Shown piece after piece: positions 36,062 to 62,568 of a DNA stretch of 64,000 bases. The notes beneath the pieces were generated by a model. The model was not told where the DNA came from, did not search any database, and saw only the letters and a list, made by a program, of their open reading frames with translations. Made by a program: the position numbers and the translations under genes. The stretch is from positions 186,001-250,000 of IMG/VR virus record IMGVR_UViG_3300049001_000044. One strand, given 5' to 3'. Each line of letters begins with the position of its first letter. Position 1 is the first letter of the stretch.

Positions 36062-36934
36062 TTAGTTTAGGCCGGCGAGTTTACGCAGTTGCGCGAACTG
36101 ATCGGTGGTCGACTTGGCTGGAGCAGCAGGTGCACGCTCTTCACCGGTTTTTACAACACTAGCACCCTCGGTCAGAGGAGTTGCTGCAGCAGCCGGCTTG
36201 GTGTCTTCTTTCAGAACACGGCCGATGAATTGGTTGTAGGCTTCTTCCAGACGATCGGTTTCGATGTTCTGGAGTACGAATGCCATTTGCTCACGCTTCT
36301 TACCAGACAGCGGGGCAAGAATCTTTTCGAGTTTCGATTCACGCACAATCTTGGCATTTGCGGACTCAAGAGTCGCGATTGCTTTGTTGGCGTCATCGAG
36401 TTTAGCAACAGCGGCTTGGAGCTTCGATTGGATCGAGTCTTCATCGATGTGCGACTTGGTAAATTCGGTAGCGAATGCTTCGAAGATCTTGCGACCAAAC
36501 TCATTCTGCTTGACGATGTCAAGGTCTTCTTTGAGTTCAGTAAATTCCTCATTCAGACGGAGCTCGAAGAACGAGTCGATCTTATCGATGAGAGAGTCAA
36601 GTTCTTCTGCTAGCTGGTCAGCCATCGAGTGCTTTTCCTCGACGATCTTTTCAGCATATTCTGCTTCGAGATCACGGAAACGTTCGATGTCAGCTTTCAG
36701 TTCGGCTACTTCTTCTTCCAACTTCGCAGCAACGAATTGCTCGACGTTCTCAACCAAAGCATCACGTTCGGTGGCCCACTGTTCTGCAAGCTCGCTTCTC
36801 ACTGTCATGGAAACTTCTTCACGTACTGCAGTTTTGTACTGCGATACGGCTTCGGTCCACTGAGAGGAGATTTCGTTCTTAGCGTCTTCGCTAAGAAGTT
36901 CAGAGCTTAGCAGTTTCTGGAGGATTTCATCCAT
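36062..36934 (-). CDS. gp22: prohead core scaffold protein
   Basis: Acidic coiled coil upstream of gp23; FGRKIFEAF motif; C-terminus LRKLAGLN. Confidence 0.85.
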   Translation of the reverse strand: MDEILQKLLSSELLSEDAKNEISSQWTEAVSQYKTAVREEVSMTVRSELAEQWATERDALVENVEQFVAAKLEEEVAELKADIERFRDLEAEYAEKIVEEKHSMADQLAEELDSLIDKIDSFFELRLNEEFTELKEDLDIVKQNEFGRKIFEAFATEFTKSHIDEDSIQSKLQAAVAKLDDANKAIATLESANAKIVRESKLEKILAPLSGKKREQMAFVLQNIETDRLEEAYNQFIGRVLKEDTKPAAAATPLTEGASVVKTGEERAPAAPAKSTTDQFAQLRKLAGLN

Positions 36935-37038
36935 TGCAAGTTCTCCTTTTGAATATTTGGGGAGTAAGATATTCGTTATATCCTACGGCTATGAACTTTG
37001 ACGCGGTAAATAGAAACGTCTATTTGGTATAGCGATCC

Positions 37039-37045
37039 TATTTAT
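37039..37045 (-). promoter_or_regulatory. late promoter-like ATAAATA before gp22-gp23
   Basis: Position and consensus. Confidence 0.6.
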
Positions 37046-37164
37046 GGGGTGGCGCAAAATTCCATTGAAAACCGCTAAAAAATCTGTTGCGGTTCGCTGC
37101 TAAACTGTCACATTCAGCAGCGGTTGCGTAATCTTACTTATAGGTTCTTCGTGAACCTGTTAGA

Positions 37165-37611
37165 TTATTCGCCTGCTTTTACAAGCTTATTGTACTTCGC
37201 CTTCGTTACACCAATGTCATTGAAGAACTTTTTGTTCTCTTCCCAACCACCAGCGCTGTCGAAATCAAACTTGTCTTCAAGCTTAGCAACAAGAGAATCG
37301 CCGGCATTACCACCGCCAACCATCAGACTGCGAACAGCCCGAGCGGAAGTTCTGATACCTTTGCCTGCGAGTTCGCTAACGATCTCGTCGATGATTACCT
37401 TGACGTCGTCTTCTAGGCTTTCACCCAGTATGTCGTCATCCGATTCAGTGTTTTCATTTGTTTGGGGTGTTGCTACAGGTGCTACTTGTGCCAGCCCAGA
37501 CACCTCACGCATTTTCACGGTGAGGTAGTTGTGCAGATCAAGTGCAGCATGGTCAGTGTTGTCGTTGATGACATTGTTGAGCATGCTCTTCAGTGCTTCT
37601 CGCTTATCCAT
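37165..37611 (-). CDS. gp67-like prohead core protein
   Basis: In the head module; N-terminal helix LKSMLNNVIND...LDLHNYL followed by an acidic linker. Confidence 0.55.
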   Translation of the reverse strand: MDKREALKSMLNNVINDNTDHAALDLHNYLTVKMREVSGLAQVAPVATPQTNENTESDDDILGESLEDDVKVIIDEIVSELAGKGIRTSARAVRSLMVGGGNAGDSLVAKLEDKFDFDSAGGWEENKKFFNDIGVTKAKYNKLVKAGE

Positions 37612-37668
37612 ATAAGTTCTCCTTTAAGTGCACGACTGAGTCGTGCACGTATTTAGCAGGTGCTGTCA

Positions 37669-37914
37669 TCAGGCGTCGAACGAATCGACCTTCCCTTTGA
37701 GTGCTTTGACAGCTTTTTCGTAGTCCTTCGTCGTCTTGAAATTGAAGTAGAACATGTCCATGAAATACTCCATGTCGACTGCCACACCAGCCTTTGCGAT
37801 GGTGATGCAGGCAGTCTTCACCTTCTCTTCATCTTGCAAGCCAAACGAAGGAGCAGAGCCGGTGTCTTCCTTGCAGTAGTTCGCAAGAGCTAGAATTCTG
37901 TCTTTCGTTAGCAT
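37669..37914 (-). CDS. hypothetical protein
   Basis: Likely start MLTKDRIL. Confidence 0.55.
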   Translation of the reverse strand: MLTKDRILALANYCKEDTGSAPSFGLQDEEKVKTACITIAKAGVAVDMEYFMDMFYFNFKTTKDYEKAVKALKGKVDSFDA

Positions 37915-37924
37915 AGTGATCCTC

Positions 37925-38551
37925 TTATTTGACGTTGCCAGCTTCGTAGCCATTACCCTCAAACGACTTCAGGGTCTGCTGTACAGCGCCGACGGTGTTG
38001 TACGGTTTGTTTGGCAGGTGGATTTGAACGTAGTCGTCGCTCTGCGAAGTCTCAAGCGGTGCACCATCCACGCTGTGCGTTTTCTCCAGCGCTGCTTTGA
38101 TCGCGTTGACTTTCTGAGTGTAGGCCTTGTGGACTGACACGACGCTTGCGATGTTTTGCGCGTCTTCCTTCAAGTCATCGCCTTTGGCTGCGCCATCAGC
38201 AACGCCTGCGTCATACACCTTCTTCAGGAAGTCTTCCATTGCAGTGAGGTCATCAGACTCACCACCGTCTGGGTCACCAATGCCGAACTTCTTGCAAACA
38301 CTTTGAGCGATCTTAGTGATGATCTCTGGGAGATCATCCTTGTCATCCTTCTCTTTGTCCTTGCCTTTACCTTCAGCATCACCGCCATCTTCACCTTTTT
38401 CGATATCGAGGTCAGCGTCGTCCTTCTTGGCGTCGTCTTTTTCTTCCTTGTCCTTCTTCGCTGGCTTAGCGTTAGTAGGAGCGTCGACGACTTCCTTCCA
38501 TTCCTTAAGCAGTGGAAGACCCGCCAGCTTTCTGAGTTTATTTTGATCCAT
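37925..38551 (-). CDS. putative head internal/core protein with N-terminal LRKLAGL
   Basis: MDQNKLRKLAGLPLLKE; K/D-rich. Confidence 0.7.
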   Translation of the reverse strand: MDQNKLRKLAGLPLLKEWKEVVDAPTNAKPAKKDKEEKDDAKKDDADLDIEKGEDGGDAEGKGKDKEKDDKDDLPEIITKIAQSVCKKFGIGDPDGGESDDLTAMEDFLKKVYDAGVADGAAKGDDLKEDAQNIASVVSVHKAYTQKVNAIKAALEKTHSVDGAPLETSQSDDYVQIHLPNKPYNTVGAVQQTLKSFEGNGYEAGNVK

Positions 38552-38553
38552 GA

Positions 38554-39168
38554 TTATTTCGCGGTGAGTTTTTCGATGAACTTCTTGATCTCAGCGGTGA
38601 GGTACTTCTGAGCCTTTTGGTCTTCAATGACAGCTTCTGCCAGGGTACGGATCTTGGCGTGTTCCACCGATTCACGTACGACGTCTGGGTAGCAGCCTGG
38701 GCCGCTAGGCTGAGCAACGATGTCAACGGTAACGAAGTTGAAGTCTTCAACGACACCTTCATTCGTGACGTTACCAGTACCACGCGACGACACACCAAGC
38801 TTCACGCCGCCGGCGATCAGGTTCTGCACGATGAGGCCCGATGGAGTGTTGAGAATCTTGCACTTACCGATAGCATTGTTGCCATCCATGTAAGCTTCAG
38901 TGATGATGTGGGAAACGTTCTTCAGGTCGATCGACAGATTGTCTGGGTGATTGAGTTCGCCCATGACGTAAGAACCTTCTTTGCACTTCTCATTGATGAA
39001 GTTGACAGCGCGGGAAATTTCGCTGTGCGGGTAGACGCGCTGATTCAGGTTCTTCTGTTCAGCTGCCATCATGCGGCCAGCCAGATAGATGTTCTTGTCA
39101 GTGTCGCGGGATTCTACCAGAGCGGCCTGCGCCGGTGTGAAACGCTCGATGAGGAGCTGCTGTTTCAT
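38554..39168 (-). CDS. gp21: prohead protease
   Basis: GELNHP, LGVSSRGTG and VDIVAQPS motifs. Confidence 0.93.
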   Translation of the reverse strand: MKQQLLIERFTPAQAALVESRDTDKNIYLAGRMMAAEQKNLNQRVYPHSEISRAVNFINEKCKEGSYVMGELNHPDNLSIDLKNVSHIITEAYMDGNNAIGKCKILNTPSGLIVQNLIAGGVKLGVSSRGTGNVTNEGVVEDFNFVTVDIVAQPSGPGCYPDVVRESVEHAKIRTLAEAVIEDQKAQKYLTAEIKKFIEKLTAK

Positions 39169-39213
39169 GTTTATCTCCTTTAAGTTATCAGGATAGCCTG
39201 AGTCTAGACCCGT

Positions 39214-39220
39214 TATTTAT
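39214..39220 (-). promoter_or_regulatory. late promoter-like ATAAATA before gp21
   Basis: Position and consensus. Confidence 0.55.
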
Positions 39221-39266
39221 GGGGTTAGAAAGTGCGCCACCATAATAGCAGCGCACTCAAACTACA

Positions 39267-40934
39267 TTAGGCCGCAGTACTGGCAGTTGCAGTGCCGGTA
39301 TCTGTGGTGTCGTCAGTAGCGGTGTCATCAGTTGTTTCATCACCTGCTTCAGCTGCAGCGCCGAAGGTTTCACTGTTGTCCATGCCACCTCCCATGTCTC
39401 CACCCATTCCCATACCACCATCGTCCATCGCCGCATCGCCGTCCACTTCAACTTTCTCACGGTTACCGTAAACAGCTGGGTCATACATCTGCTGCAGCTC
39501 ACCAACCTCTGGGCGGTTTTCGATGCTACGCTCTTGCTTCAGCATTGCTTCGTTCATCTGGATTTCGTCTTCAGTCAGACCAAGGTAACGCTTCAAGATG
39601 AATCGCTTCGACAGATACTCAGTGTCTTCAATCGACTTGAACGAATTGATGAGGTCAGTGTCAAGTGCTGCTTGACGGTACAGCGCGAAGTTCTGTGGCT
39701 CTGGCAGGGACAGACGGAAAATCTCACTATCCAAGTTGATGCCTACGACCTGTAGGTACGTTTTGAATTCACGATCGAACACTTCTTCCAACGACGTTTG
39801 CAGACGCATGATGAAGTTAGCGAAGCGGAGTTCTTCAATGTACGCAATACCTACCTTGCCATCGCTGAACTGCGCGCCTTGAGCATCTTGACCAGCCATG
39901 TAGGAAGTAGGAACGCGAAGAGCACGGAACAGACGCTTGAGGAAGTAATCGAGTTCAGGGATATCCCAAGTTTGACCGCCTGGCAAGGTCTCAACGCGTG
40001 AGCCTCGACCCGCTGCGGTGACTGGGAAGAACATGTCTTCCTGAATAGATTCAGGATTGTACTGCGAGTCAGTGTTCTGACCGCTGTTTTGCGAAGGAAT
40101 ACGTTTCTGACGAATGTCGTTCTTGATCGATTCGATGTATTGCTTCACTCGCTGCGGTGGCATATTACCAACGTCGATGTAGAAGACACGACGCTCTGGT
40201 GCACGCACGATACGGTAAATGATCGCAGCGCTTTCCAACATTTGCAGCTTCTGCCAGTCAAGGTAGGCTGGTTGAAGGATCGAACGGCCGAACGGCGCGG
40301 TGTCATCCATCTCATCCGACAGGGTGAAGTGCAGCATTGCTGCGGCTGGAACAATCTCCACGCTCTCAGTCTGTCCTTGGCCTTCAATTTGCGCTGGACG
40401 AATGTGGTAAGCGATCTTCTCACCAGTGAAAGGATCGATCTCGATACCAACCACACGAGTCGCATTCACATACTCCCATGGCTTTGTATCGGAGGTCTTG
40501 CGGAAGAAGCAGTCACCGTACTTACACATCGAACGGGCGATGTTGTACACCTTCTTGTTCAAACCATGGAAGTTACTCCAGTGGCGAAGTGCTGCACGGA
40601 GGGTAGTAGCGGTGGTGTCGCTGATGTTTTGGTTTTCTTCTGTCTGATAATCGATGATGAAGGGCAGATTCGTTCGCTTGTCGGCGTTCGAGATTTCTTC
40701 AGCAATGGTGTCAAGCGCACGTGATACGTCGCCTGCATCCATGTTGTCATATTGCTTGTACTTCTGAAGGCGCGATGCCGCGCCTTTCATCACGTTCGTG
40801 AACCACGAAACGGTTGCAAACGATGCAAAGCCTGGGGACTGACCCTGGTCATCCTGCCTAACGGGCGCCTGATTGTAAGACGCCTTACGTGTAGCAGGAG
40901 TGACGATGCGCCAGTAATTGGTCCATGCGGCCAT
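39267..40934 (-). CDS. gp20: portal protein
   Basis: IYRIVRAPERRVFYIDVGNMP, FFP...GRGSRVETLPGG. Confidence 0.95.
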   Translation of the reverse strand: MAAWTNYWRIVTPATRKASYNQAPVRQDDQGQSPGFASFATVSWFTNVMKGAASRLQKYKQYDNMDAGDVSRALDTIAEEISNADKRTNLPFIIDYQTEENQNISDTTATTLRAALRHWSNFHGLNKKVYNIARSMCKYGDCFFRKTSDTKPWEYVNATRVVGIEIDPFTGEKIAYHIRPAQIEGQGQTESVEIVPAAAMLHFTLSDEMDDTAPFGRSILQPAYLDWQKLQMLESAAIIYRIVRAPERRVFYIDVGNMPPQRVKQYIESIKNDIRQKRIPSQNSGQNTDSQYNPESIQEDMFFPVTAAGRGSRVETLPGGQTWDIPELDYFLKRLFRALRVPTSYMAGQDAQGAQFSDGKVGIAYIEELRFANFIMRLQTSLEEVFDREFKTYLQVVGINLDSEIFRLSLPEPQNFALYRQAALDTDLINSFKSIEDTEYLSKRFILKRYLGLTEDEIQMNEAMLKQERSIENRPEVGELQQMYDPAVYGNREKVEVDGDAAMDDGGMGMGGDMGGGMDNSETFGAAAEAGDETTDDTATDDTTDTGTATASTAA

Positions 40935-40943
40935 TCATCTCTC

Positions 40944-43900
40944 CTATGTGTTTGTGCGTCCAGTTGTGAACTGGAACGCTGTTGGGATTTGGTTCATGTT
41001 GTTTGGCGGTGGTGCTGCTGTCGCCGAGGTATTCGCAGAAGGTTTCTGATCGACCAACGACTGAAGGAAAGCAACTGCCTGTGCCATGTTGGTTGCGATG
41101 CTTTGAAGCTGTGCAAGAGCTGCTTCATCCTTGACATCGAGAAGGTTCTCTCCATCCTGCGTGAGGGTATTTATACCTTTGGTCAGCGCGTCGGTAGCTG
41201 AATCCACCGTCTGAATTTGCTGAGTTGGAGGCGCAATCGGCTGCACTGAAGTGTTCAGTGGGGTTGCCATCGTAGAAGCAAATGGCGAGATCGAATCCAG
41301 CAGAGGAGTCGAAGTCGAAGCATCTGTTGCTGTCTTGATAGTCGTCGAGAGATCGCCCATCGTCGTCGCAAGAGGATTCAGTGAAGAGGTCGAAGTCATG
41401 GTTGTTGCCAAGGACTTCAACGCATCGCTTTGCTTGCCGGTTGCCTTCGCTTGGATTACACCTGCCTCTACGAAGACAGCCTTGATCGCGTCTGCGATTG
41501 CCGTTGCCAGCGTAGGAGTAGCTTGATTAATTCCATCGACGATAGGATTCGCCGGCTTGTCATCAGAGGTTGGCTTCGCAACAGTAGACTTGTCATCCTT
41601 CTGGGGATTGATCATCTGTCCAACGGCCTGGCCGAGCTGCGCAGGTGTCATGTCCTTCTTAGGAGATGCTTGCTGCGCATCTGGCTTTGATTGCGCTGGC
41701 GTAGGAGTTGGGGCAGGCGTAGAAGCTTGCTGCGCATCTGGCTTCTTGTCGCTAACAACTGCGTCAGCGATTGCTTCACCACCAGTCTTGCCTAGCCAGC
41801 TGCCAAGTGCACCGCCAACAGCACCACCAATAAGAGCGCCAACGCCAGGAATTGGGATCAATACCTGACCGATTGCTGCACCTGCGAGACTAGCCGCCAC
41901 ACCACCAGCCGCACCGGTAACTGCGCCAGTCTTCTTCACAGTGGCTTGCTTATCAGTAATCTCGCCCTTCTTACGCTGTTCTTCTGCATCGTCGATGTCG
42001 CCCCACGCTTGATACGCTGCGATGATACCAGCCAGTGGGCCAGCTGCCTTACCCAAAATACCAGCTCCACCCTTGATGAGGCTACCAGCCGCTGATGAAG
42101 CTCCACGAAGCGCACCAGGTGCCGCCTCAGCAACACCAGTTGCTGCACCTCGCACGGCGCCCACCGCAGTTCTACCAGCGTTCATCACGCTTCCAGCTGC
42201 ACCTTCAACTGCGCCGGCGACACGAGGTGCAGCACCACGTACGGCTCCCCATGTACTGCTTGCCGCACCACGAACAGCATTAGCCGCAGTGCTAGCACCA
42301 GTACGCGCAGCGTTGAGTCCGCCAGATCCAATGTTCTTCAGCGCCGACAACAGTCCGCCTGGACCACCCATCAGCAACGATGTGCGAGAAAGCTGGAATG
42401 CGAATGCGACAAGTGCAGCGGTGGAACCGACGATTGCACCAAGGAATGCGTTGTTGATAACACTAGAGACTTGGTTGATCGCCTGACCCAGCACAGCAAC
42501 GGACTCGTTACCTTTCGCTGCTTCGCTCGCCTTCTTCTGCTCGTCAGGATTTACCTGTGCTCCAGCTTCCTTCGCCATCTGGATCTGTTCACCAGATCGC
42601 TGAATTTGCTGCGTTTGGCCGCTAGGCTGAAGATCTTGGCGAAGCTCGTTGTAGATGTCGCCCATTGCGCCATTACCGCTAGCACCATATCCTTCATTCG
42701 TTCTCTTTTCAAACTCCTGGCCAATTTGGCCAGTCAGTTCGGTAAATCTTGCCTGCTCGTCCTTGCTTCTTCTACCCTTAGATGCGAGCCTGTAGACTTC
42801 CATCGCTTGGTCTGATCCCATGCCAGCGAGCATTGCCTGCTGCATAAGCTTGGCTGCATCACCAGTACGTTCAGCGAGACGACCTCTTTGCTGTTCCTGC
42901 TGAGCCTTTACCAGCTCTTGTGCTTGCTGAATTTCCAGACCTTGCGCAACGTACTTAGTACGCAGTTGCACGAGCTCTTGCGCGTACATGTTCCTACGCT
43001 GCGTGTCCATACCCAGCATGATGCCAAAGGCGCCATCGGATTGGAACAGAGTCTTGTTAAGCGCTGCAAATTCCTGCGCAGAAATCTTGACCATTCCAGA
43101 TACTTTCTGGAATTGATCCATCATGGTGTCAGCGTACTTGTTCAGCTCGCCTGGATCCCTGATGTTGATACCTGCAGAGATTGCCGATTCGACAGTTGGG
43201 CCGATAGTTTCGGCCGCCTGCTTCATCGTGTAACCATACTTCTGGAACGTCTTCTGCATCATGCCCATGGCGGCCTGGAACTTCTCAGGGCCATAGATCG
43301 CAAGCATCCGCTTGTTCTCATCCATCAACGCAACGGTCTCCTTGAAGGAGAGACCCAACGCTACAGATGCTTTGTTTACTTGCAGATAGCTGGCAGGGAT
43401 TTGGGCGATGTTGAAGTCAGAAATCTCTTCCCACATCTCCTTGATCTTACGAGCTGCGAACTTGAACGCCGCGGTCGAAGAGAGGAAGTCTGTCACCATC
43501 TTCTTGATGCTGTCCATCGCAGAGAACTGACCAGCTGCGTTGTTCATTGAGCCAATGAACCTACCTAGGGCAGTTTGGAACAGCTGAGTGTTGCGATCGA
43601 TGTTATGCGCAGTGTTACCGAACGTCGATTCAAGGTTTGCGATTTCCTGAGCAAGACCTTCCCAGTCAATGTTCTCGAGGTTACCACGCATCTGGCCATT
43701 TGCGTCAAGGACGTTATGGGCTTCGTTCTGTGGATGGAACAAACCGCGCTCTTGCAACATAGCTGCCATTCTAGCGACCGCATCACGGTTGATAGATGCA
43801 CCATCTTGACCCATCGCAGCTCTAGTTGCTTCTTCAGGAGATAGGTGATCACCCGGTGAGACGTTGAACTGACGTGCGTTGAAAAGGTCACCAAACGATT

Positions 43901-44636: not shown

Positions 44637-44667
44637 GGGAGGTGTTTCCTGAGTGACTGACGTACGG

Positions 44668-44692
44668 ATAAATAGATCTAGCAAGTATTTAT
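44668..44692. promoter_or_regulatory. divergent late promoter pair (ATAAATA on + at 44668, on - at 44692)
   Basis: Lies between the tape-measure-like and gp26-like genes. Confidence 0.55.
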
Positions 44693-44730
44693 GGTTGCAC
44701 CAGATTATAGAAAACACACATAGGAATCCC

Positions 44731-45813: not shown

Positions 45814-45899
45814 GAGCTTACCAGAGGTGCTCAGAGATGTTCAGACGACTTTGACACTAGCAACTACATCTCATTGTTAGGAGGTCTCTCAGCACCTCT
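45814..45899. repeat. dispersed ~85-bp element, copy 4
   Basis: GAGCTTACCAGAGGTGCTCAGAGATG...GAGGTCTCTCAGCACCTCT. Confidence 0.7.
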
Positions 45900-46234
45900 T
45901 ATTCGTCGACAACTTCACCGCTCAGACCATCACGGTCATGATACACCGCACCATGCTCGAAGTGGTAGATGCTTTCGGCATTCTTCCCATCGTTCAGGAC
46001 GATCTCACCACGGCTGCCACCCACGATCGAGAGAATTTCCCCGGTGAATTCAATGATCTCCTGGAAGTCGGAGTTATCCTCAACCCAGTGGTATGCGTCA
46101 TGAGGGGTATTGAACACCTTGTAATCAACGCCATCACCGCCTGAGCACGCCAGATAGCGCTTGTTATTCGGGGATTCGGTGAGTGTGGTCTGGGTCTGCA
46201 TACCCGCGAGTTTGCGAAGCTTATTTTGATCCAT
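45899..46234 (-). CDS. putative head internal protein with N-terminal LRKLAG
   Basis: MDQNKLRKLAGM...LTE. Confidence 0.7.
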   Translation of the reverse strand: MDQNKLRKLAGMQTQTTLTESPNNKRYLACSGGDGVDYKVFNTPHDAYHWVEDNSDFQEIIEFTGEILSIVGGSRGEIVLNDGKNAESIYHFEHGAVYHDRDGLSGEVVDE

Positions 46235-51730: not shown

Positions 51731-52837
51731 TTACACGATCCTAGTGTAGTAGTTACTCATGTCTTCTTTGGAGATAAATGACTTACCGTAGCGAGTCATT
51801 AAAGTGATCTGTGGTTCGAACGTATTAGGATCGATCACTACACCTGAAGACATTAATGGGACGTATGGGTTGAACACCAGTCCAGCATCAACCTCGTCAT
51901 TGAACATTCCGCCGCCCTTGTATCCAATCACTGCCTTACCATCTAGCGCCAGCGGGGTTAAGAAGACGCTCATGTTATTAAGCACGCCAACCTTCTTGAA
52001 ACTCCAATCATTGCCTCCGCCCTGCACTGAAACAAAGTTTGACTTTGGATCCATCTGCAGTTCAAGCAGGGAGTCGACGTTGACAATAACGAAGCGAGCA
52101 GCACCACGGCGAGTGTTTCTTGCCATATCATTTGATGCCCTGTTGATGGTTAGGGCAAGGGTGGCGCCATCTTCCTGTTTCACTTCCTTAGCAACATCGC
52201 ACATGTCGGTGAAGAATTCATTATCGATCTCCGCTGCGATTTGCTTCGCGAGAATAGAGTGGAACTCGTTGACGGCGTCAATATGGATTGCTGCCAGATC
52301 CTGCACTGCCTCAGTGGTAAATCGAGCTTGTAGACGACGCGTACCAGCGGTTGCTGTTTGCTTCACGATCTGTAGTACCATGCGCTTGCCTTCAACATCG
52401 ACATGATCCACAGCTGTGAAACGAAGGAAGTAAGACAGGCCAACTGGACCTTCCATCGGTTGAATACCGACGAAGTTGCCAACTGCGCTCATCACGAAGA
52501 TGTCTCTAATCAGTGAGAGATAGTCTACGCGAGACATTTTGCCCATCACGTTTCCATCCATTCGCGAATATCCATCTGCGTTCTTCAACAACTGCAGAAT
52601 GATTTCTTGCTTGTGGGCGGGGACAGTAGCGAGGAGGGTCTTGTAAAGTGCAGCGGTTTTCTGTTCTTCGGTCTTACCGAAGATGTGCTTCACGCCTTGA
52701 GCAATTTGGGTAAGACCAACCTTTGGGACGTGGAGCTTACCACCAGGCTTAGCCGACTCAGCAAGGGCCTTCGTAATAGGGCTAAACAAAGTGCCAAAAC
52801 CCATCCTTATTTGGATGAGACCTTCTTTAAGATTCAT
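51731..52837 (-). CDS. second gp23/gp24-family capsid protein
   Basis: VGIQPMEGPVGL, AGTRRLQARFT and PYVPLMSSGVVIDPNTF shared with gp23. Confidence 0.8.
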   Translation of the reverse strand: MNLKEGLIQIRMGFGTLFSPITKALAESAKPGGKLHVPKVGLTQIAQGVKHIFGKTEEQKTAALYKTLLATVPAHKQEIILQLLKNADGYSRMDGNVMGKMSRVDYLSLIRDIFVMSAVGNFVGIQPMEGPVGLSYFLRFTAVDHVDVEGKRMVLQIVKQTATAGTRRLQARFTTEAVQDLAAIHIDAVNEFHSILAKQIAAEIDNEFFTDMCDVAKEVKQEDGATLALTINRASNDMARNTRRGAARFVIVNVDSLLELQMDPKSNFVSVQGGGNDWSFKKVGVLNNMSVFLTPLALDGKAVIGYKGGGMFNDEVDAGLVFNPYVPLMSSGVVIDPNTFEPQITLMTRYGKSFISKEDMSNYYTRIV

Positions 52838-53020
52838 TTACCAATCTCCTGCGATGTAGTGGAGCATGGATTTGTACGCCACCACGGTTGACTTACAATC
52901 AGGGCACATTCCTGAAAACCTTGGCCATAACTTCCTAACCTCCGAAGAGGAAAGCCCTTTTGAGGCTTCCTCGTCGAATGCAGGCATGACCTTCTCGTGC
53001 TTGCATGTTGCTGGGTTCAT
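52838..53020 (-). CDS. small Cys-containing hypothetical protein
   Basis: CKH...CPDC; coupled to gp46. Confidence 0.6.
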   Translation of the reverse strand: MNPATCKHEKVMPAFDEEASKGLSSSEVRKLWPRFSGMCPDCKSTVVAYKSMLHYIAGDW

Positions 53021-54768: not shown

Positions 54769-55811
54769 AGTGTGCTGTAGATTTCGACCAATTTGGTCGC
54801 GTCAATGGTTGAAGTTCCGGAAACACCGGTCTGCAGCATCGTAATCACAGCATCATTGAGTGAGGACAGATCGAAGTTATCGATCTCACCTTCTTCACCC
54901 GCGATTGCGTCTTTCCTCTCACTGATGTTTTCTTCCAGCGAGAACTCACGCAGCCCCATGGTCTTGACCATCTCTTCACGAAGTGCTTGCGCATCCGAGT
55001 AGGCGATGTCAATGTCTATTAGGCATCGAACCCTGCACTTTGGTGGGAAATCCATGCTGCCATCAAGAACGGAAGACAGACGGATCTTGCGGTACTTTGG
55101 ACAGTCTTCCCAATTGATGAACTCCACTTTATCGGTGGAAGTATCCAAGAAGCACAGGCCGCGATCGTCATCGCCTTGATCGCCGTAATCCATCGGGAAG
55201 GTGTTGCCGATGTACACGACGTTGTCGTTGGCTTGACGCTTGTGGAAGTGACCCGAGAAGATGTGGGTTGGTCCAGCAAATTGCGTGTGGTCTGGTCCAT
55301 GATCCATACGGCGATCGGTACCAGTCACAACGAAGTTACGGAACTCGAAGTGTCCCATCCAGTACGGCAGATGGTTGTACTTTGCAAGGGTTGGATATTC
55401 GTTCTTGAACAAATATGGGCAGATGAGGAACTGATCGCCAACGACGGTCGGCTCGTTCACAAGCACGATGTTCTCAAACTCTTCAAACACCTTCGTGCTG
55501 AAGACCTTCCTGCTTTCACGATGGTAAAGGTCGTGATTGCCAATGATGATGTAGACAGGGATGCCCAACGAGTTGAGTGCTTCTACTGCATCACGCGCAA
55601 AGTTGAGAGTGAGGATATTGACTGCGTTTCGATTCTCAAACCAATCGCCAAGGAACATGATGTGCGTGACGCCACCTTCCTTCTTGACTTGCTCGCAGAA
55701 CCACAGCACAAAATCCAAACAATCTTGGTTGTGCATGATCGAGTTGTTCTTCTTACCAAAGTGGATGTCGGTGAACATCGCTACCTTGGATTTCTTAGGT
55801 AGCGAACTCAC
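54765..55811 (-). CDS. gp47: recombination endonuclease nuclease subunit (Mre11-like)
   Basis: TDIHFG, GDWF, GNHD and SGHFH motifs. Confidence 0.95.
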   Translation of the reverse strand: MSSLPKKSKVAMFTDIHFGKKNNSIMHNQDCLDFVLWFCEQVKKEGGVTHIMFLGDWFENRNAVNILTLNFARDAVEALNSLGIPVYIIIGNHDLYHRESRKVFSTKVFEEFENIVLVNEPTVVGDQFLICPYLFKNEYPTLAKYNHLPYWMGHFEFRNFVVTGTDRRMDHGPDHTQFAGPTHIFSGHFHKRQANDNVVYIGNTFPMDYGDQGDDDRGLCFLDTSTDKVEFINWEDCPKYRKIRLSSVLDGSMDFPPKCRVRCLIDIDIAYSDAQALREEMVKTMGLREFSLEENISERKDAIAGEEGEIDNFDLSSLNDAVITMLQTGVSGTSTIDATKLVEIYSTL

Positions 55812-56660
55812 TTATACCATCTCCACTTCTTCAACTTCGACCACGGCGACAGGTGCTTCCACCTTCACTTCGACGACCTTCTTCTTGCGAGTAGCTTTTG
55901 GTGTGGTCTCATCCTTGACCTTCTTCACTCGAGGCTTCTTTTGAACTGCTGCAGGAACGCTCATAGTATCAGTTGAGTTCATGAATGTGATGTTGCCTTC
56001 CTCGTCTTGAGTAAAGTCAACGCCAGGGACCAACACCTTGACTGCGCTTGGTTGACGACCCAGATAACGGTGCTTGATGACCTTCTCTTTCGGTGCTTCA
56101 TCAACTGCTGCGCCATCCAACTCCACAGCCCTAAGTGCTGCGAATTGCTCATCGTCCTCATCCAGCGTCAGGGTGGCTGGACGATAACTAGAAGCATCGG
56201 AGTCCACAACCTCGTGGTTCTCTTCGCCTCCGTAGTTATACGATGGGTTTGCACCACTCTCGATCAGCAGCCTGTCTCGAACCTTACGGTGCTTCTTCTC
56301 GTCCGCCATGTACTGAAGGAACGAGTTGTGGATAGCAGTCGTGTAGAACGAGAACGGGTTTGCTGACTTTTCAGGGTTGAACTTCAGTGCGTTATTGCAC
56401 AGGTTAGCAATTGCCGCGGCGACCATGTCTTCACGGAACGAATAACCTACGAAGTTGCCCTTGCGGGAGTAGCGTTCAGCAATCATCCAGATCATGCCAA
56501 TAAGCTTGTCTGTGACTTTGCCGAGCTCTTTGGCTTCCAAAACTGCAGGAAGTAGTTGAGCGTTGGTGACGTAGTGTCCACGCGTTGACGTGGACTTTTC
56601 TCTCTTTAGGTATTTCAAAACAATTTCTCCTCGGACGGTGCGCTTTGGAGATACATTCAT
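55812..56660 (-). CDS. gp55: late-transcription sigma factor
   Basis: HYVTNAQL...YSFREDM...FNPEKSANPFSFYT; upstream of gp47 as in T4-like phages. Confidence 0.9.
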   Translation of the reverse strand: MNVSPKRTVRGEIVLKYLKREKSTSTRGHYVTNAQLLPAVLEAKELGKVTDKLIGMIWMIAERYSRKGNFVGYSFREDMVAAAIANLCNNALKFNPEKSANPFSFYTTAIHNSFLQYMADEKKHRKVRDRLLIESGANPSYNYGGEENHEVVDSDASSYRPATLTLDEDDEQFAALRAVELDGAAVDEAPKEKVIKHRYLGRQPSAVKVLVPGVDFTQDEEGNITFMNSTDTMSVPAAVQKKPRVKKVKDETTPKATRKKKVVEVKVEAPVAVVEVEEVEMV

Positions 56661-56724
56661 TATATCAACGGGTGCAGTCAGCGAAAACTGCACGTAGTCG
56701 TCCGGGCGTGAAAAGACCCAGGTA

Positions 56725-56731
56725 ATAAATA
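56725..56731 (+). promoter_or_regulatory. late promoter-like ATAAATA
   Basis: Heads the plus-strand baseplate operon. Confidence 0.55.
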
Positions 56732-56755
56732 CTCCATCATTGAACAGGAACTTCC

Positions 56756-57472
56756 ATGGAATTCAAAAAGCTACTTGAGGATGCACCAGCGCCTCGCACA
56801 AAGCGTGTCGCGGTCGTCATTGGTCGATTCAATCCGCCGACGAAAGGGCACTACGCTGTGATCAACAAGGTGAAGAAGTTCATTAAGGACAATCCTAAGC
56901 TGAGTCTTGAGGCGGTGCCAGTCGTTGTTGTGATTGGCGGTGGAAAATCCGATCTAGACAAAGCAAAGAATCCACTCTCGGTTGACGAGAGAATTCTATT
57001 TATGAAAGCCTCAGGCAATGCGAACGCATGCAACTTCATGCACGCTAAGAACGCATTCGAAGCTCTCACCAATTGCCGCAACGCAGGTTTAGAGCCAATC
57101 GCAATTGCGGCAGGTAGCGATCGCATTGACGACTACGTTCGTATTCTCAATCACTACTTCAAGAACAGCGACGACACCCCAATCAAGCACTACAAGGTTC
57201 ATCTCGATCGTGATGATGACGCAGTAGAGGCGGATCCAGAAGAGAAGCAAGCAAGCATGGATAACATTCTCAGCAGTATGCAGAATGGTGATCATGTGGA
57301 CACTGACCTGGTAAGCGGCTCTCTTGCTCGTCGTGCCGTAGAATTGGGATATGAGAAGGAGTTTGCTGAGATTGTAGGTTTGCCAGACAAGCCTGAGCTA
57401 GCGAAGAAGCTCTTTGACAAGATCAAGAAAGCTCTTCCACCATCAACGAAGGAAGACGATGCCAACGTTTAA
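56756..57472 (+). CDS. cytidyltransferase-like nucleotidyltransferase
   Basis: GRFNPPTKGH (HxGH-like), AGSDR. Confidence 0.8.
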   Translation: MEFKKLLEDAPAPRTKRVAVVIGRFNPPTKGHYAVINKVKKFIKDNPKLSLEAVPVVVVIGGGKSDLDKAKNPLSVDERILFMKASGNANACNFMHAKNAFEALTNCRNAGLEPIAIAAGSDRIDDYVRILNHYFKNSDDTPIKHYKVHLDRDDDAVEADPEEKQASMDNILSSMQNGDHVDTDLVSGSLARRAVELGYEKEFAEIVGLPDKPELAKKLFDKIKKALPPSTKEDDANV

Positions 57473-58400
57473 CATCGGCGACAAGTTCGCACCAAAGGTC
57501 AAAGGGTCGGTCGACAACTATCTGAACCCAACTGCAGCAAACATTGACAACAACCAACCCACTGACTTCTCAACTGCAGGTCCTATGAAGTTGCAGAGCG
57601 AGGCGCAGCAGAAACTACGCTCAACAGGTCAGGCTCACAACTTCGCAGCTCCTTATGTGGGTGGTCAAAATCCAGTCGCTGATCAACAGCTTGCAAACAA
57701 CCAGCAAGCTAGACAGGCTTCTGCTGCTGAGATGCCGCAACTCCCGTCAATGGATACTAACGAATTGAAGGTGACCATCAAGCAAGACCCAGAGGTTGGT
57801 GATGGTCCTAATGAGATCGTCTTCAAGGTCATGCCAAGGATTAGTGAGCAGGGTGGAGCTGAGTATGAGGCGATTACGCCCACGCACCACCCAGGTTCTA
57901 TTCAGAAGTTTAGAAACTCTGCGCCTAGAACTTGGAACGTCTCTGGTCGATTGATGTCTCGCACTGTTGCTGAGGCGAGTGAAAACTTGAAACTCCTGAA
58001 TATGATCAGGTCATGGCGCATGCCATTCTACGGTGAGGGAACTAACCAAGACAGTTCGACGCAAGGTAAGTTAGGCGCACCGCCGCCAATCCTCACCCTC
58101 ACTGGATACGGCCCTTCCATGATTGGCCCTGTCAAGTGCGTGCTGACCTCCTACAACTGGGACTTCGGCAACGACATGGACTACATGCCAACCGATACAG
58201 GAGCGATGATTCCTGTGCTGTTAGACATTAGCTTGGCGATGACAGAAAGTTGGTCGCCTGCAGAGTTCAGTGGCTTTGATTTGGTGAAGTACAAACAAGG
58301 AGACTTGAGTGCTGATGGTGCGTTTAAGCGGCTCACTCTTGCTACCCCGACAACTGCTGCACAGACGAACGTCTCAACTGACGAGCCTACAAGAAAATGA
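57459..58400 (+). CDS. baseplate/tail-tube initiator-like protein
   Basis: GAPPPILTLTGYG...VLTSYNWDF...YMP; likely start MPTFNIG. Confidence 0.6.
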   Translation: MPTFNIGDKFAPKVKGSVDNYLNPTAANIDNNQPTDFSTAGPMKLQSEAQQKLRSTGQAHNFAAPYVGGQNPVADQQLANNQQARQASAAEMPQLPSMDTNELKVTIKQDPEVGDGPNEIVFKVMPRISEQGGAEYEAITPTHHPGSIQKFRNSAPRTWNVSGRLMSRTVAEASENLKLLNMIRSWRMPFYGEGTNQDSSTQGKLGAPPPILTLTGYGPSMIGPVKCVLTSYNWDFGNDMDYMPTDTGAMIPVLLDISLAMTESWSPAEFSGFDLVKYKQGDLSADGAFKRLTLATPTTAAQTNVSTDEPTRK

Positions 58401-58771
58401 AAAACAAGAACAGTCTACTCCTCAACACTTCGCGCTATGTGCAGGGCGGAGTGAGTGAGACACAGAACGTCCGCATCGAATGGTGGGAACGTTCTGTCTT
58501 TGCGAAGGATCCATCCGATCGTGTGTATGTTGTCGAGCCAATTTACGAAGGCAGGCTCGACAACATCTCTAACGCTTTCTACGGCGATCCTCGTTATTGG
58601 TGGGTGCTTGCGCAGTTCAACAACATCCTTGACCCTGCATCTGAGGTCGTAGCAGGTCGAGCTCTGTTGATCCCAACAAAAGATCGTCTATCGCTCATGC
58701 TAACAGGCAGACAAGGCGGAGTTGCTAGTACTAGAACTGAAGTTCCTTCGATTCCACCAGTCATCATCTAA
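58397..58771 (+). CDS. baseplate wedge protein (gp53-like, LysM-like)
   Basis: RLDNISNAFYGDPRYWWVLAQFNNILDP. Confidence 0.8.
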   Translation: MKNKNSLLLNTSRYVQGGVSETQNVRIEWWERSVFAKDPSDRVYVVEPIYEGRLDNISNAFYGDPRYWWVLAQFNNILDPASEVVAGRALLIPTKDRLSLMLTGRQGGVASTRTEVPSIPPVII

Positions 58772-58774
58772 CAA

Positions 58775-60898
58775 ATGCAACAGAATAACTATCCAAATCC
58801 TCTCGACAATTTTAGGTCGCACGCATACCACTTTACCTTGACGGTCGCGAACACTACTGAAGCGCATCGCAAGATGATTGAGATGGCGGGCAACGGAGGC
58901 AGCTCGTATATCCAAGCCGTCAACAACGCAATGTTGGGCGGCGCAGTGGATGTCGGCGGCGATAGCGCCTACCTCATCCTTGACACCAGGCGCTTCTCCC
59001 AGTTCTCAGTCACTGACTTCACCATGCACCATCGCTATGGAACGGGTAACGTTGCTAACCCAACAACCCCTATCTCAGCGGCGAAGATGCGCGTCGTGGA
59101 CAGCACAGGTCTTAGCTTCATGAACTTCCTCATGGATATCATGAGGACTAAAATCCAATCGACCCGTGCTAGCGCGTTCTTCCTTCTTACTATCACATTC
59201 CACGGTCACACCGACGATAGCCCAGAGCCGCACACTGAGACGGTCGCAACGTGTTTCATTCCGATGATCTTGACCTCTCTGCATTTTGAGTTCACCAATA
59301 CAGGGACTATCTTCGACATCGAGTTCTGGGAAGTTGAAGGCAATCCAGGCGGAGCTGTTCCTCAGCTCGTAGACTTGGGTGACATTCAAGCTGTTAGTAC
59401 GGAGAAGACGTCGAACACGCTAGGTGGTATCTTGCAATCGTTGGAAGATCGTCTCAACATCCGCTCACTCCAATTCTACCAGAAGTACACGAACGAAGCG
59501 TACGAAAGAGCCACCGCCGAGGACAAGAAAAACTTCGACAAGGCGGGTAAGCTGGTTCAGTACATGATCACCGTCCCTGATGAGTGGAAGAACTTCCGCA
59601 TCAACAGTGCTGGTAAGAGCGCGAACGTCGAGCAGGTGTTCCTTGCGAAGGCGTCAAAGACTCCAGACAAAGATCCAAAGCAGGTGGAGCAAGAGAAGAC
59701 CGTTGCCGCACCTGCGCCGTCCGGTGATCGTGCTAGCTATTACTCCTTCTCTCAAACCACTGACGTTCCAATGGCGATCAAGATAATGCTGGAATCTTGC
59801 AAGGAATATCTGGATCTGGCAAGCGAAGAGAAGAAGCAGAAGGGTCAAGCAACCGTTCATCGCACCATCGTAAGCATCACTAGCGACGCGAACACGTACA
59901 TGATCCACTTTGACATCTACCCTTACTTCGTTCCAAAGGTTGATGAAAAGAAGAACACTGTTGCGACGGGCGATGGTAAGACTCAAAAGCGGTTGACGAA
60001 CGGTGACATCAAGAACCTCATCAAGTACGACTATCTGTTCAGCGGCAGGAACGAACACGTGCTTGATCTAAAGGTGGACTTTGCTCCCACCGCGGCTGTT
60101 GCGCTTGACATGGATTTGAGCATTGGTCAGACGCGACTCGCTGAGAACGCATCGACTGGCCAGAAGCAGAAGGAAGTGAAAGAGAACGGACAAAGCAAGA
60201 CGGTCAATGACAACCCGCTCATTCGCAAGTCTGAGCCAATCTTCCCACCACTGAAGACGAAAGATCAACAGACGAACTTTGGCCACATGTCGACTGAAGA
60301 GTACAAGAAGGAAGAAGCTCAGGACATGATCAAGGCGAAGCAGCAACACACCAACACTATGGCTTTGCTTCACTTCGTTGCTTCGCTTCAAGCTCAGCTG
60401 ACGGTTCGTGGCAACCCAAACATCATTCGCAAGTACGCGGATAGGAACCTTCGTGGCGGCATCGCTCGCCACCCTGCAACTATCAGTTCGCCTGACACGC
60501 TTCGCTCACTTCGTTCTGGCGGGTCAGCTGAGAGCACGTACAACGGCTCGATCAAGTCGAGGATGGTCAGTGAGAAGGCCCTTTACTACACGTCGTTTGT
60601 GAAGCCGCGTATCGAAGAAGACAAGGCAAAGCAGAATGGTACGGACCCGTTGCTTCATGGCGACGACATCGCGACCACCCCGTTGTATTGCATGGTCAAC
60701 ATCTACGCGCCGAACACGGACTTCCTGGGCAATCAAACTGATGGCGGCATGTTCACCAATAAATTCTTCTACGACGGCGTCTACATGGTGTTGCAGATTG
60801 AGACTCAATTCTCAGGCGGAACATTCAGGCACGTCATGAACTTGATGCCATACGACTTGGATGGCTCCTTCAGCAAATCAACAGAAGCAATCAAATGA
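58775..60898 (+). CDS. baseplate hub-like structural protein
   Basis: 707 aa between gp53-like and gp5-like genes; YPNPLD N-terminus. Confidence 0.6.
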   Translation: MQQNNYPNPLDNFRSHAYHFTLTVANTTEAHRKMIEMAGNGGSSYIQAVNNAMLGGAVDVGGDSAYLILDTRRFSQFSVTDFTMHHRYGTGNVANPTTPISAAKMRVVDSTGLSFMNFLMDIMRTKIQSTRASAFFLLTITFHGHTDDSPEPHTETVATCFIPMILTSLHFEFTNTGTIFDIEFWEVEGNPGGAVPQLVDLGDIQAVSTEKTSNTLGGILQSLEDRLNIRSLQFYQKYTNEAYERATAEDKKNFDKAGKLVQYMITVPDEWKNFRINSAGKSANVEQVFLAKASKTPDKDPKQVEQEKTVAAPAPSGDRASYYSFSQTTDVPMAIKIMLESCKEYLDLASEEKKQKGQATVHRTIVSITSDANTYMIHFDIYPYFVPKVDEKKNTVATGDGKTQKRLTNGDIKNLIKYDYLFSGRNEHVLDLKVDFAPTAAVALDMDLSIGQTRLAENASTGQKQKEVKENGQSKTVNDNPLIRKSEPIFPPLKTKDQQTNFGHMSTEEYKKEEAQDMIKAKQQHTNTMALLHFVASLQAQLTVRGNPNIIRKYADRNLRGGIARHPATISSPDTLRSLRSGGSAESTYNGSIKSRMVSEKALYYTSFVKPRIEEDKAKQNGTDPLLHGDDIATTPLYCMVNIYAPNTDFLGNQTDGGMFTNKFFYDGVYMVLQIETQFSGGTFRHVMNLMPYDLDGSFSKSTEAIK

Positions 60899-62160
60899 AC
60901 GCAATCGACACCTTCGCAAACTTCATCCCCTTCATTCATGAAGGACAGGTAGTAAAGACCGACGACCCTGACCAAATGGGAAGGGTGAAGGTGTGGGTGC
61001 CTGCAGTTGACGGTGAGAACTTTGAGATCGACGCACTGCCTTGGGCAGACTACGCTCCTTCATTCTTCGGTTTCACCGTCGATTATCCAGGCGGCAATGG
61101 TGGACCAAACAACTCTCACACCGCTTACGGCATGTGGGCTGTGCCAAAGATCGGTGCATCCGTCTACATCTTCTGCGTGGGCGGTGATCCCACTCGTCGT
61201 GCGTACTTTGCATCCTCAATCCGTCTACATCGCAACCGCTCTCTCCCTGCTGGTAGGAACACGGATCCGAATGGTAAGGTTGGTCCATGGGGTGATGCTG
61301 GCGACGGCCAGGGCAACTTGAATCCTATCGAGCCAGCCTACTCTAATCTTCGTGACCAGTTCCAAAACAAACTAACGGAGTCAGAGGCAATCACTAGAGG
61401 TTTGTACGAGAGACAGATCGCCCAGGCGAAGCAGGATAAGGACGGTGCAGAGGGCTACACTAAGACGCCTATCTCAGGTGAGTCGTATTTGGATCCCCAA
61501 ACCTATTGCTGGGTAACTCCTGGTCGCCATGCGATCATTTTTCAAGACGACCCTGCTCATGCTAGGGCAAGGATCAAAACAGCTGAGGGACACCAGGTTA
61601 TCTTAGACGATGCGAATGAACGTATCTACATCTCTACAGCGAAAGGCAAGAGCTGGATTGAGATGGACTTGGACGGCCATATCCAAATCTTTGGCGCTGA
61701 TTCTTTCTCTGTTCGTTCGGGCGCTGACATCAACCTCTACGCTGACAAGAACATCAACATGGAAGCTGGACAGAGCATCAACATGAAGGCTGACAAAGGT
61801 GACTTGAAGGTGGCAGTGGGTGGATCGATCCACTTGAATGCTGTCAAGGACGGCTTCTTCACCGTCTGCGGTGGACTTCACCAAGCATCTGACGGAGCGC
61901 TTCGCTTGACAACAAAAGAGAGCATGGACTTGCGTGCTAAGAGCGACATGACGGTCACTGGCGGCAGAGCGATGGATTTGAATGGTGGCAGTGGTATGAA
62001 GCTTAGCGCAAGCAGAGTGGACGTCAATGGTCCTGCTGCGAAAATGGCAGTGGAAGCAGACTGTGCTGCGACGGCAGAGAGCCCAACGATTGTTCCAGGT
62101 CATGAGCCATGGAAGAGGCCTGAAACGAAAGGCAAGCGTAACAAAAACTGGAAGGCATGA
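60895..62160 (+). CDS. gp5: baseplate central spike (gp5/VgrG-like), no lysozyme domain evident
   Basis: DPDQMGRVKVW OB-fold, PKIGA, TAEGH and beta-helix repeats. Confidence 0.85.
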   Translation: MNAIDTFANFIPFIHEGQVVKTDDPDQMGRVKVWVPAVDGENFEIDALPWADYAPSFFGFTVDYPGGNGGPNNSHTAYGMWAVPKIGASVYIFCVGGDPTRRAYFASSIRLHRNRSLPAGRNTDPNGKVGPWGDAGDGQGNLNPIEPAYSNLRDQFQNKLTESEAITRGLYERQIAQAKQDKDGAEGYTKTPISGESYLDPQTYCWVTPGRHAIIFQDDPAHARARIKTAEGHQVILDDANERIYISTAKGKSWIEMDLDGHIQIFGADSFSVRSGADINLYADKNINMEAGQSINMKADKGDLKVAVGGSIHLNAVKDGFFTVCGGLHQASDGALRLTTKESMDLRAKSDMTVTGGRAMDLNGGSGMKLSASRVDVNGPAAKMAVEADCAATAESPTIVPGHEPWKRPETKGKRNKNWKA

Positions 62161-62186
62161 AAAATGGGAGCTAAAGCTCCCATTTT
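62161..62186. terminator. bidirectional terminator
   Basis: AAAATGGGAGC/GCTCCCATTTT. Confidence 0.75.
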
Positions 62187-62187
62187 C

Positions 62188-62568
62188 TTAATGTGATGGA
62201 ATGTCCGCGAAAGGAACCATCTTCTTCAACGACTCTCGATCTTCGCTTTCAAGATGTCCACCGCTTTCCTTAAGTCGCTCGATCATCCAAAAAAATCTAA
62301 CAACCTGACGGATAGTTTCGGGATCAAACTTGTCCTCAACAGCATGAGCTAGGCTGCCATCATTGAACCATCCCGATTTACCGTCTGGGCCCTTCACATC
62401 TTCGTCATCGTCATCTTGATGAACCCACTCAATACCGCCTCTGCGCATTGCGCCTGCTGCGATCAGAGCGGAAACAATATCAGGAATCTGGTCTACACTT
62501 TCCGTGACAATGACGGATTCTTGTAGCGGCAGTCCGGCCAGCTTACGAAGCTTGTTGAGATCTTTCAT
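62188..62568 (-). CDS. putative head internal protein with N-terminal LRKLAGL
   Basis: MKDLNKLRKLAGLPLQES. Confidence 0.7.
   Translation of the reverse strand: MKDLNKLRKLAGLPLQESVIVTESVDQIPDIVSALIAAGAMRRGGIEWVHQDDDDEDVKGPDGKSGWFNDGSLAHAVEDKFDPETIRQVVRFFWMIERLKESGGHLESEDRESLKKMVPFADIPSH

Follow-up and report, generated by a model that had tools for sequence, protein, structure and literature searches.

A scaffold-tail peptide of a jumbo phage recurs as a probable cleavable prohead-targeting tag on unrelated small proteins

Outside T4 and the phiKZ group, little is known of how a giant phage selects the proteins that it loads into its head; those that are ejected along with the DNA are prime candidates for functions in early host takeover and anti-defence. 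In the IMG/VR virus record IMGVR_UViG_3300049001_000044, the complete 343,229-bp genome (one contig, GC 50.5%) of a jumbo myovirus of the XacN1/RsoM2USA lineage, one peptide bears on this question: the LRKLAGL motif that ends its head scaffolding protein stands again near the N-terminus of three scattered small proteins, here called ORF208, ORF111 and ORF126 after their length in amino acids (aa). An earlier note on a 64,000-nucleotide (nt) stretch of this genome (bases 186001–250000; hereafter the window) proposed that the peptide is a portable tag that mimics the scaffold and directs cargo to the capsid. Here we ask what the copies are for. On the evidence below, the motif is probably a cleavable prohead-targeting peptide that copies the helix-and-hook anchor of the scaffold.

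Four copies of one peptide at protein termini

The motif was found on the minus strand exactly where the earlier note had placed it, at the end of the scaffold and at the starts of the three open reading frames (ORFs). The scaffold closes with ...DQFAQLRKLAGLN (tail QLRKLAGLN, then the stop codon), and the N-termini read MDQNKLRKLAGLPLLKE, MDQNKLRKLAGL in ORF208, MDQNKLRKLAGMQTQTTLTE, MDQNKLRKLAGM in ORF111 and MKDLNKLRKLAGLPLQE, MKDLNKLRKLAGL in ORF126. The positions in the window are as follows.

36062–36934, minus strand: head scaffolding protein, coiled coil, 290 aa (phrog_10922, E=1.3e-23)
36068–36088, minus strand: scaffold anchor motif LRKLAGL, residues 283–289, followed by N and the stop codon
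37925–38551, minus strand: tagged ORF208 (208 aa), in the slot between protease and scaffold
38501–38551, minus strand: ORF208 tag module, residues 1–17 (motif 6–12, LKE 15–17)
45899–46234, minus strand: tagged ORF111 (111 aa)
46175–46234, minus strand: ORF111 tag module, residues 1–20 (motif 6–12, here LRKLAGM; LTE 18–20)
62188–62568, minus strand: tagged ORF126 (126 aa), beside baseplate genes
62518–62568, minus strand: ORF126 tag module, residues 1–17 (motif 7–13, LQE 15–17)

The LxE sites said to follow each tag within about 10 aa are LKE, LTE and LQE, which end 5, 8 and 4 residues past the motif. The genome-wide count that the earlier note had proposed as a check gave exactly four matches to [LIVM][RK]KLAG in six frames of the entire genome, all four at protein termini, versus an expected 0.27 in first-order Markov simulations and 0.065 in amino-acid shuffles of the ORFs (0.07–0.27 in rounded figures). 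A chance origin of the four copies is excluded. The bodies behind the tags are unrelated, as had been claimed: trimmed of their first 25 residues, ORF208, ORF111 and ORF126 gave no mutual BLASTP match at E 0.01 or better.

Any two copies of the heptapeptide use different synonymous codons at 4–7 of the 7 codons and differ at 5–8 of the 21 bases; the differing codons are all synonymous except for a Leu-to-Met change at the last position in ORF111, and the flanking DNA gives no alignment. Because synonymous sites differ among the copies, selection acts on the peptide and not on the DNA, and a DNA repeat, leader cassette or recent duplication is ruled out as their source. The same divergence bears on the idea that the peptide is functionless and arose as a side effect of recombination, of gene conversion or of a repeated DNA element, such as a promoter or leader cassette, copied to several genes. 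Three of the four copies do lie at gene starts, possible landing sites of mobile promoter/leader cassettes, and the tags resemble the scaffold tail of their own genome, as gene conversion would give. The peptide is, however, kept across phages with capsid proteins only 45–65% identical, and its coupling to cleavage sites, described below, is non-random. Deep conservation together with synonymous divergence effectively refutes this explanation, to which we give hardly any probability.

The motif ends the scaffolds of related phages

By capsid protein, the closest cultured relative is Ralstonia phage RsoM2USA (64%), followed by Xanthomonas phages XacN1 and Xoo-sp13 and Stenotrophomonas phages RAS14 and CM1, while PA5oct, Phosso and the Rak2/121Q-like jumbo phages stand at about 44–45%; a megablast of the head module against the phage collection found no near-identical DNA. 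We drew 80 capsid-gene loci from IMG/VR by capsid-protein alignment and read the ORF directly upstream of the capsid gene, the place of the scaffold gene here and in all relatives. The motif ends this ORF in 78 of the 79 loci having one, and the lone exception (L164:2232-3332), which ends ...KLNVWQV, looks like a frameshift in a metagenomic contig. Among the aligned scaffolds of metagenomic relatives, all 75 have the motif 0–3 residues from the C-terminus. The core in this 75-row alignment is [LI]-[RK]-[KR]-L-A-G-[LI], with an invariant Gly and with basic residues at positions +1 and +2 in 73 and 74 of the 75 scaffolds, and the motif consensus reads hydrophobic-x-x-[LI]-[RK]-[RK]-L-A-G-[LIVM]. 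Diverged forms of the tail also end the scaffolds of Rak2/121Q-like phages and of the cultured phages listed here.

RsoM2USA: ...RLKELGGVN
XacN1: ...MMKLAGIKG
RAS14: ...LRKLAGIDF
Xoo-sp13: ...LQRLAGINH
PA5oct: ...LRRLAGIK
Phosso: ...LRRLAGIEK
Vibrio phage 2.275.O: ...LTKIAGIRK
SP27: ...LDVLSGINKK
7t3: ...LERNAGIHKK

An AlphaFold2 model of the scaffold, built from the alignment, consists of long helices, a low-confidence disordered linker (residues 244–275), a short helix (277–286) and four non-helical end residues (287–290, AGLN), which form the hook; the predicted layout of the tail is thus a helix-and-hook on a tether. Upstream of the scaffold motif stands an [LIVMF]xE site at a median distance of 20 residues (range 0–31), often L-T/S-E followed by S, and therefore the anchor could be cut from the scaffold body at maturation.

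A tail reminiscent of ...LRKLAGLN also occurs in T4, where the prohead core protein gp68 (gene 68, L217:1024-1449) ends ...KALKRRKALGLS with a basic stretch and A-L-G-L near the C-terminus, and gp22 (L217:2118-2927) is without such a tail. To judge by sequence, T4 might have its counterpart of the scaffold anchor in this gp68 tail.

Tags on unrelated proteins of related phages

We scanned the genomes of seven relatives with a loose regular expression (regex) and a position-specific scoring matrix (PSSM); the scan patterns derive from the motif itself, and the PSSM leaves out the scanned genome each time. These looser, leave-one-genome-out patterns were adopted because the motif is diverged in RsoM2USA (LKHLAG, LKELGG), where the exact RKLAG pattern has no match. 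The scans revealed the following N-terminal tags.

RsoM2USA_380: MDITRLKHLAGVPLLE, in the slot after the protease, as ORF208
RsoM2USA_68: MDFSRRLKFLAGLCE
RAS14, nt 209376: MNHPNLDAMRRLAGLPVLNE
XacN1 ORF218: MNSIERLTKLSGIHTLTE
Xoo-sp13, nt 125498: MNFTQRLQELSGIPITE
PA5oct gp281: MFNINDILRLAGVQAVKE, with a second, internal copy ...LDEISKLAGISNVEE

Tagged ORFs likewise occur in the head modules of L136–L140, the metagenomic loci most closely related to this phage, two of them with an internal second copy. The motif starts at residue 6–7 in the three ORFs studied here and at residue 6–9 in 10 of the 11 tags of relatives, the remaining one (L138_3591) starting at residue 17. The tagged proteins of the relatives are mostly unrelated in body, and of ten motif-bearing proteins compared with PHROGs, seven had no match, two matched phrog_15988 and PA5oct gp281 weakly matched phrog_17311, of unknown function. 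The proposed portability is thereby borne out: the motif heads unrelated bodies in this phage, in RsoM2USA, RAS14, XacN1, Xoo-sp13 and PA5oct and in five metagenomic relatives, and it is used internally too. Internal or multiple copies with acidic linkers occur in PA5oct gp249, in a 468-aa family of XacN1, Xoo-sp13 and RAS14, and in the phrog_15988 protein of Rak2/121Q-like and Vibrio phages.

The phrog_15988 protein, annotated 'virion structural protein', carries two or three motif copies with very acidic linkers between them (SP27, L113:12806-13786; Vibrio phage 2.275.O, L129:16652-17887). It may be a scaffold-like core protein made of repeated anchors.

The tags are coupled to sites of the prohead-protease type. 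In 13 of the 14 N-terminal tags an [LIVM]xE lies 2–9 residues behind the motif, whereas 16.6% of random 13-residue windows contain one (binomial P ~8e-10), which supports the claim that the tag is removable, as far as sequence can indicate this. The tags also follow the scaffold of their own genome, matching its tail at 5.05 of 10 positions compared with 4.33 for the tails of other genomes (permutation p=0.003, scaffolds reassigned among 10 genomes); with a small sample and regex-picked instances, this co-variation is supporting evidence only. Together with the presence of the motif at the end of all 75 aligned scaffolds, it agrees with the mimicry of the scaffold that had been suspected.

Further PSSM matches in this genome, at nt 116792 and 36957, were dropped for their low score and absence of supporting context.

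Motif-bearing proteins annotated as virion proteins in relatives

Annotations of relatives bear on whether the motif is capsid-directed. In PA5oct (NC_071039), gp281 and gp249 are annotated 'structural protein, ESI-MS/MS' (electrospray ionization tandem mass spectrometry), and the multi-copy phrog_15988 protein is annotated as virion or structural in 121Q, CBB, BF, K64-1, RaK2 and others, in line with what the earlier note had supposed for its tagged proteins. The PA5oct scaffold gp330 has no ESI-MS/MS note, although its neighbours have one, and in phAPEC6 the coverage of the scaffold was 4.9% versus 74.9% for the capsid protein (PMC7247149), as expected of a degraded scaffold. In the RsoM2USA study, which identified just ten bands, no tagged ORF was among them; the XacN1 paper likewise does not list its tagged ORF, and no virion protein list with XacN1 ORF218 was found.

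A proposed route into the prohead

The T4-type head module lies on the minus strand at 34.8–41 kb of the window. In addition to the scaffold and ORF208, it contains the following genes.

34823–36040, minus strand: major capsid protein, gp23-like (PF07068, E=1e-92)
37165–37611, minus strand: ORF148 (148 aa), a small conserved protein between ORF208 and the scaffold
38554–39168, minus strand: prohead maturation protease, T4 gp21 family (S77; PF03420, E=6.9e-24; phrog_207, E=4e-56), the presumed tag-removing enzyme
39267–40934, minus strand: portal protein, T4 gp20-like (PF07230, E=2.7e-88), an alternative receptor candidate for the motif

These matches, with phrog_10922 for the scaffold, uphold the names of the capsid, protease, portal and scaffold genes, and they constitute the core machinery for a capsid targeting sequence (CTS) of the T4 type.

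We infer the binding partner, the cleavage, and the packaging, ejection and function of the three proteins as follows. The motif would form a short amphipathic helix and a hook at the scaffold's end, carried by a flexible tether. Through it the scaffold would be anchored, inside the prohead, to an invariant partner; the most likely one is the gp23-like capsid protein, by way of its inner face or its N-terminal propeptide. Other late proteins, with this peptide at their very N-terminus, would bind to the same receptor and so be assembled into the prohead alongside the scaffold. The S77 (gp21-type) protease would then cut at the [LIVM]-x-E behind the tag and probably also cut the scaffold at the [LIVMF]-x-E ahead of the anchor; cargo bodies would be freed in the head and scaffold fragments would leave. 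The freed small proteins would stay with the DNA and probably be ejected into the host like the internal proteins of T4.

The site behind nearly every tag would also suit a different role, in which the motif is a docking site of the prohead protease, an exosite or degron by which, in place of cargo loading, proteins are singled out for cleavage or the protease is brought to the scaffold. The ORF208 gene is, moreover, translationally coupled to the protease gene, its start codon lying 3 nt past the protease stop codon. The scaffold motif, however, is placed at the extreme C-terminus, with its nearest site upstream and farther away, a spacing and orientation unlike those of the tags. The T4-type protease (gp21) is active only in the prohead, and cleavage would give relative-less small proteins no gain outside it. 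We regard protease docking as very improbable, and it too would put the tagged proteins in the prohead.

Several points weigh against the proposed targeting function. The tag of L140, one of the 14, has no nearby [LIVM]xE. In the more distant relatives (L141–L216), no tagged ORF lies closer than 7 kb to the capsid gene; their tags would lie elsewhere in the genome or be less used. The motif alone is not fully specific, because the PSSM also matches at least one conserved non-structural family, at PA5oct nt 143974, a match that was dropped since this phage's homologue does not have the motif. Some of the 'structural protein' labels cited above are perhaps copied by homology and not measured. 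All functional statements made here rest on sequence comparison and on the annotations of other authors, and the expression, packaging and cleavage of ORF208, ORF111 and ORF126 are predictions of this kind. Finally, in T4 the core and not the shell is the proposed target of the CTS, whose propeptides have a described affinity for the core (PMC9026906).

This last point favours the serious alternative to the capsid protein as receptor, the scaffold core. The peptide would here be a small helix that pairs with its own copies or with the coiled coil, tagged proteins would co-polymerise with the core, and the scaffold tail would make scaffold–scaffold rather than scaffold–shell contacts. An identical peptide on both partners is the expected look of a homotypic contact, and the multi-copy motif proteins with acidic linkers (phrog_15988, PA5oct gp281) look core-building. 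A complex prediction of the capsid protein (75-row alignment) with the last 45 scaffold residues gave a score of 0.01, which lends the shell no support and yet speaks neither for nor against binding to it. Against the core stand the scaffold C-terminal ends of 80alpha and P22, which contact the capsid protein according to the structural or genetic data reviewed in the 80alpha paper (PMC5644958), and the charge of the invariantly basic motif (mean +1.9 over the last 9 residues of the scaffold tail), which faces a conserved, net-acidic capsid propeptide (mean −1.1). Because the 80alpha and P22 tails bind the capsid protein, and because the tail here is net basic and the propeptide net acidic, the capsid protein is the favoured candidate receptor, through its conserved acidic N-terminal propeptide; a core target is in our judgement unlikely.

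Comparison with known systems

The CTS of the T4 internal proteins IPI, IPII and IPIII was reportedly described by Mullaney and Black in 1996. The IPIII propeptide is presumably unrelated in sequence to the tag of the jumbo phages. The T4 gp22 tail (...AKVASRF) has no motif either, and the motif regex found no match in positions 102000–132000 of the T4 record (30 kb, genes 20–24). To this extent the tag is distinct from the T4 CTS, as the earlier note had maintained; in function, the other half of that claim, the two appear analogous, the T4 CTS being a 10-residue N-terminal propeptide that suffices for packaging and is cut off by gp21 (PMC9026906). The two have in common that they are N-terminal propeptides of about 10–20 residues on unrelated small proteins, that a gp21-type (L/I)-x-E closes them, that they go with a T4-type head module (S77 protease, gp22-like scaffold, gp23-like capsid protein) and that the cargo bodies behind them evolve fast. 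Unlike in T4, the tag here is the scaffold's own C-terminal tail peptide and also stands in internal, tandem and possibly C-terminal positions, and we know it from sequence alone. As far as we can tell, its function class is that of a T4-kind capsid targeting sequence, and it is not of the T4 CTS sequence family.

In phage 80alpha and the satellite SaPI1, the C-terminal helix-and-hook of the 80alpha scaffold was seen bound to the N-arm of the capsid protein, and SaPI1 CpmB, a second and unrelated protein, has the same peptide and uses the same capsid site (PMC5644958). A second protein that copies the scaffold's capsid-binding tail is therefore already known. What is alike is the build of the scaffold tail, a short amphipathic helix ending in a hook a few residues long, for which the AlphaFold2 model here has a 10-residue helix and a 4-residue hook. 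The motif there is RIIK, not LAG; the copy sits on the satellite's competing scaffold, not on cargo; and the peptide is C-terminal in both proteins and not coupled to a cleavage site.

In herpesviruses (UL26/UL26.5) and in lambda (C/Nu3), the protease enters the procapsid by way of the scaffold's capsid-binding C-terminal tail, which is later cut off. The shared tail of these pairs results from in-frame nested genes, whereas the copies here are independently encoded and N-terminal on cargo. The consensus of encapsulin cargo-loading peptides, like the tag, contains a Gly. Such short, portable peptides suffice to load unrelated cargo into encapsulins, where they bind the inner face of an HK97-fold shell (PMC8346489, PMC11866011); in contrast to the tag, the peptides stay uncleaved, there is neither scaffold nor protease, and the shell is of another family.

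What is new here is one linear motif with two predicted uses, as the C-terminal anchor of a scaffold and, in N-terminal or internal position, as a cleavable tag on cargo, and its conservation over a large supergroup of jumbo phages. A literature search, outside which many subscription journals lay, found neither the motif strings nor such a tag described, and the papers on XacN1, RsoM2USA, PA5oct and phAPEC6 make no mention of a scaffold-tail motif or tags. We are evenly balanced on the broader proposal that the jumbo-myovirus supergroup as a whole (XacN1/RsoM2USA-like, PA5oct-like and Rak2/121Q-like phages with hundreds of uncultured relatives) shares one sequence-readable cargo-loading peptide that is a copy of the scaffold anchor. 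If this is true, the set of packaged proteins that are co-ejected with the DNA would be predictable from genome sequence alone and would include fast-evolving candidate anti-defence proteins without known relatives; with a recognisable tag, the tagged genes could be listed for each genome and checked by virion mass spectrometry. About 17 added residues could then load foreign proteins into very large capsids, a practical handle of the kind that the T4 CTS and P22 scaffold fusions provide for smaller heads. Its N-terminal, internal and possibly C-terminal positions would make the motif a true linear motif, compared with the position-bound T4 propeptide, and the tag would point to the scaffold–receptor contact that controls the assembly of very large capsids.

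Cargo genes and their surroundings

The body of ORF208 consists of a charged low-complexity linker and a C-terminal domain, and the protein is likely a prohead core or internal protein. An orthologue of 143 aa with the same tag, 65 residues shorter, is present in metagenomic locus L136, and only some 47 residues of the ORF208 body have a counterpart in tagged ORFs of loci L137 and L138. Scans of viral contigs retrieved this one ORF208 orthologue and none for ORF111 or ORF126. Tblastn of the three cargo bodies against the phage collection gave no significant match, Pfam and PHROGs gave no match for any of the three proteins, and a word search with ORF126 in 5.8 billion proteins retrieved only itself. 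In the ESM Atlas, ORF111 and ORF208 reached scores <0.9 and TM <0.5 and no family. The body of RsoM2USA_68 has no match, likewise ORF111 and ORF126.

An AGGAG ribosome-binding site and a GTAAATA element about 45–50 nt upstream precede both ORF111 and ORF126. The TAAATA sequence occurs 23 times on the minus strand of the window versus 4 times on the plus strand, and it precedes the protease, ORF148, ORF111 and ORF126. These elements fit T4-type late promoters read by the gp55-like factor that the phage encodes. Other genes of the window include a tape-measure or tail-lysin gene, gp46/47-like nucleases, baseplate genes and the two below.

51731–52837, minus strand: second gp23-family protein (phrog_138, E=2e-47), probably a gp24-like vertex protein and paralogue of the capsid protein
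55812–56693, minus strand: gp55-like late sigma factor

ORF148 has a weak internal copy of the motif, KMREVSGL (near 37492–37512), which is kept in its homologues of metagenomic loci L138 and L139; this small core-region protein may use the same contact as the motif. In L136, the closest relative (capsid protein 96% identical), an unlike 85-aa ORF (L136:3323-3580) replaces ORF148 in its slot, and the ORF208 orthologue is shorter, as noted above; turnover is fast in this region of the head module.

Further motif-like peptides

A protein of 73–80 aa encoded right behind the portal gene in PA5oct (gp333, L005:3703-3924) and in Rak2-like phages (L096:2555-2782, L098:2664-2906, L099:2631-2867) contains LN(K/N)LRK(Y/M)RE(F/L)K, the first half of this phage's tag (LNKLRK) minus LAG. 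PA5oct gp333 is an ESI-MS/MS structural protein; the phage studied here lacks a gene of this kind between portal and protease.

Shortly downstream of the capsid gene, a 'chitinase'/endolysin gene ends ...AKKLLGI in XacN1 (ORF272, L002:8912-9547), ...IKKILGI in RAS14 (L003:8442-9161) and ...AKTILNIK in Xoo-sp13 (L004:8533-9174). The XacN1 paper reported this protein as packed in virions, and its tail may, to judge from these endings, represent the tag in C-terminal form, here on an enzyme.

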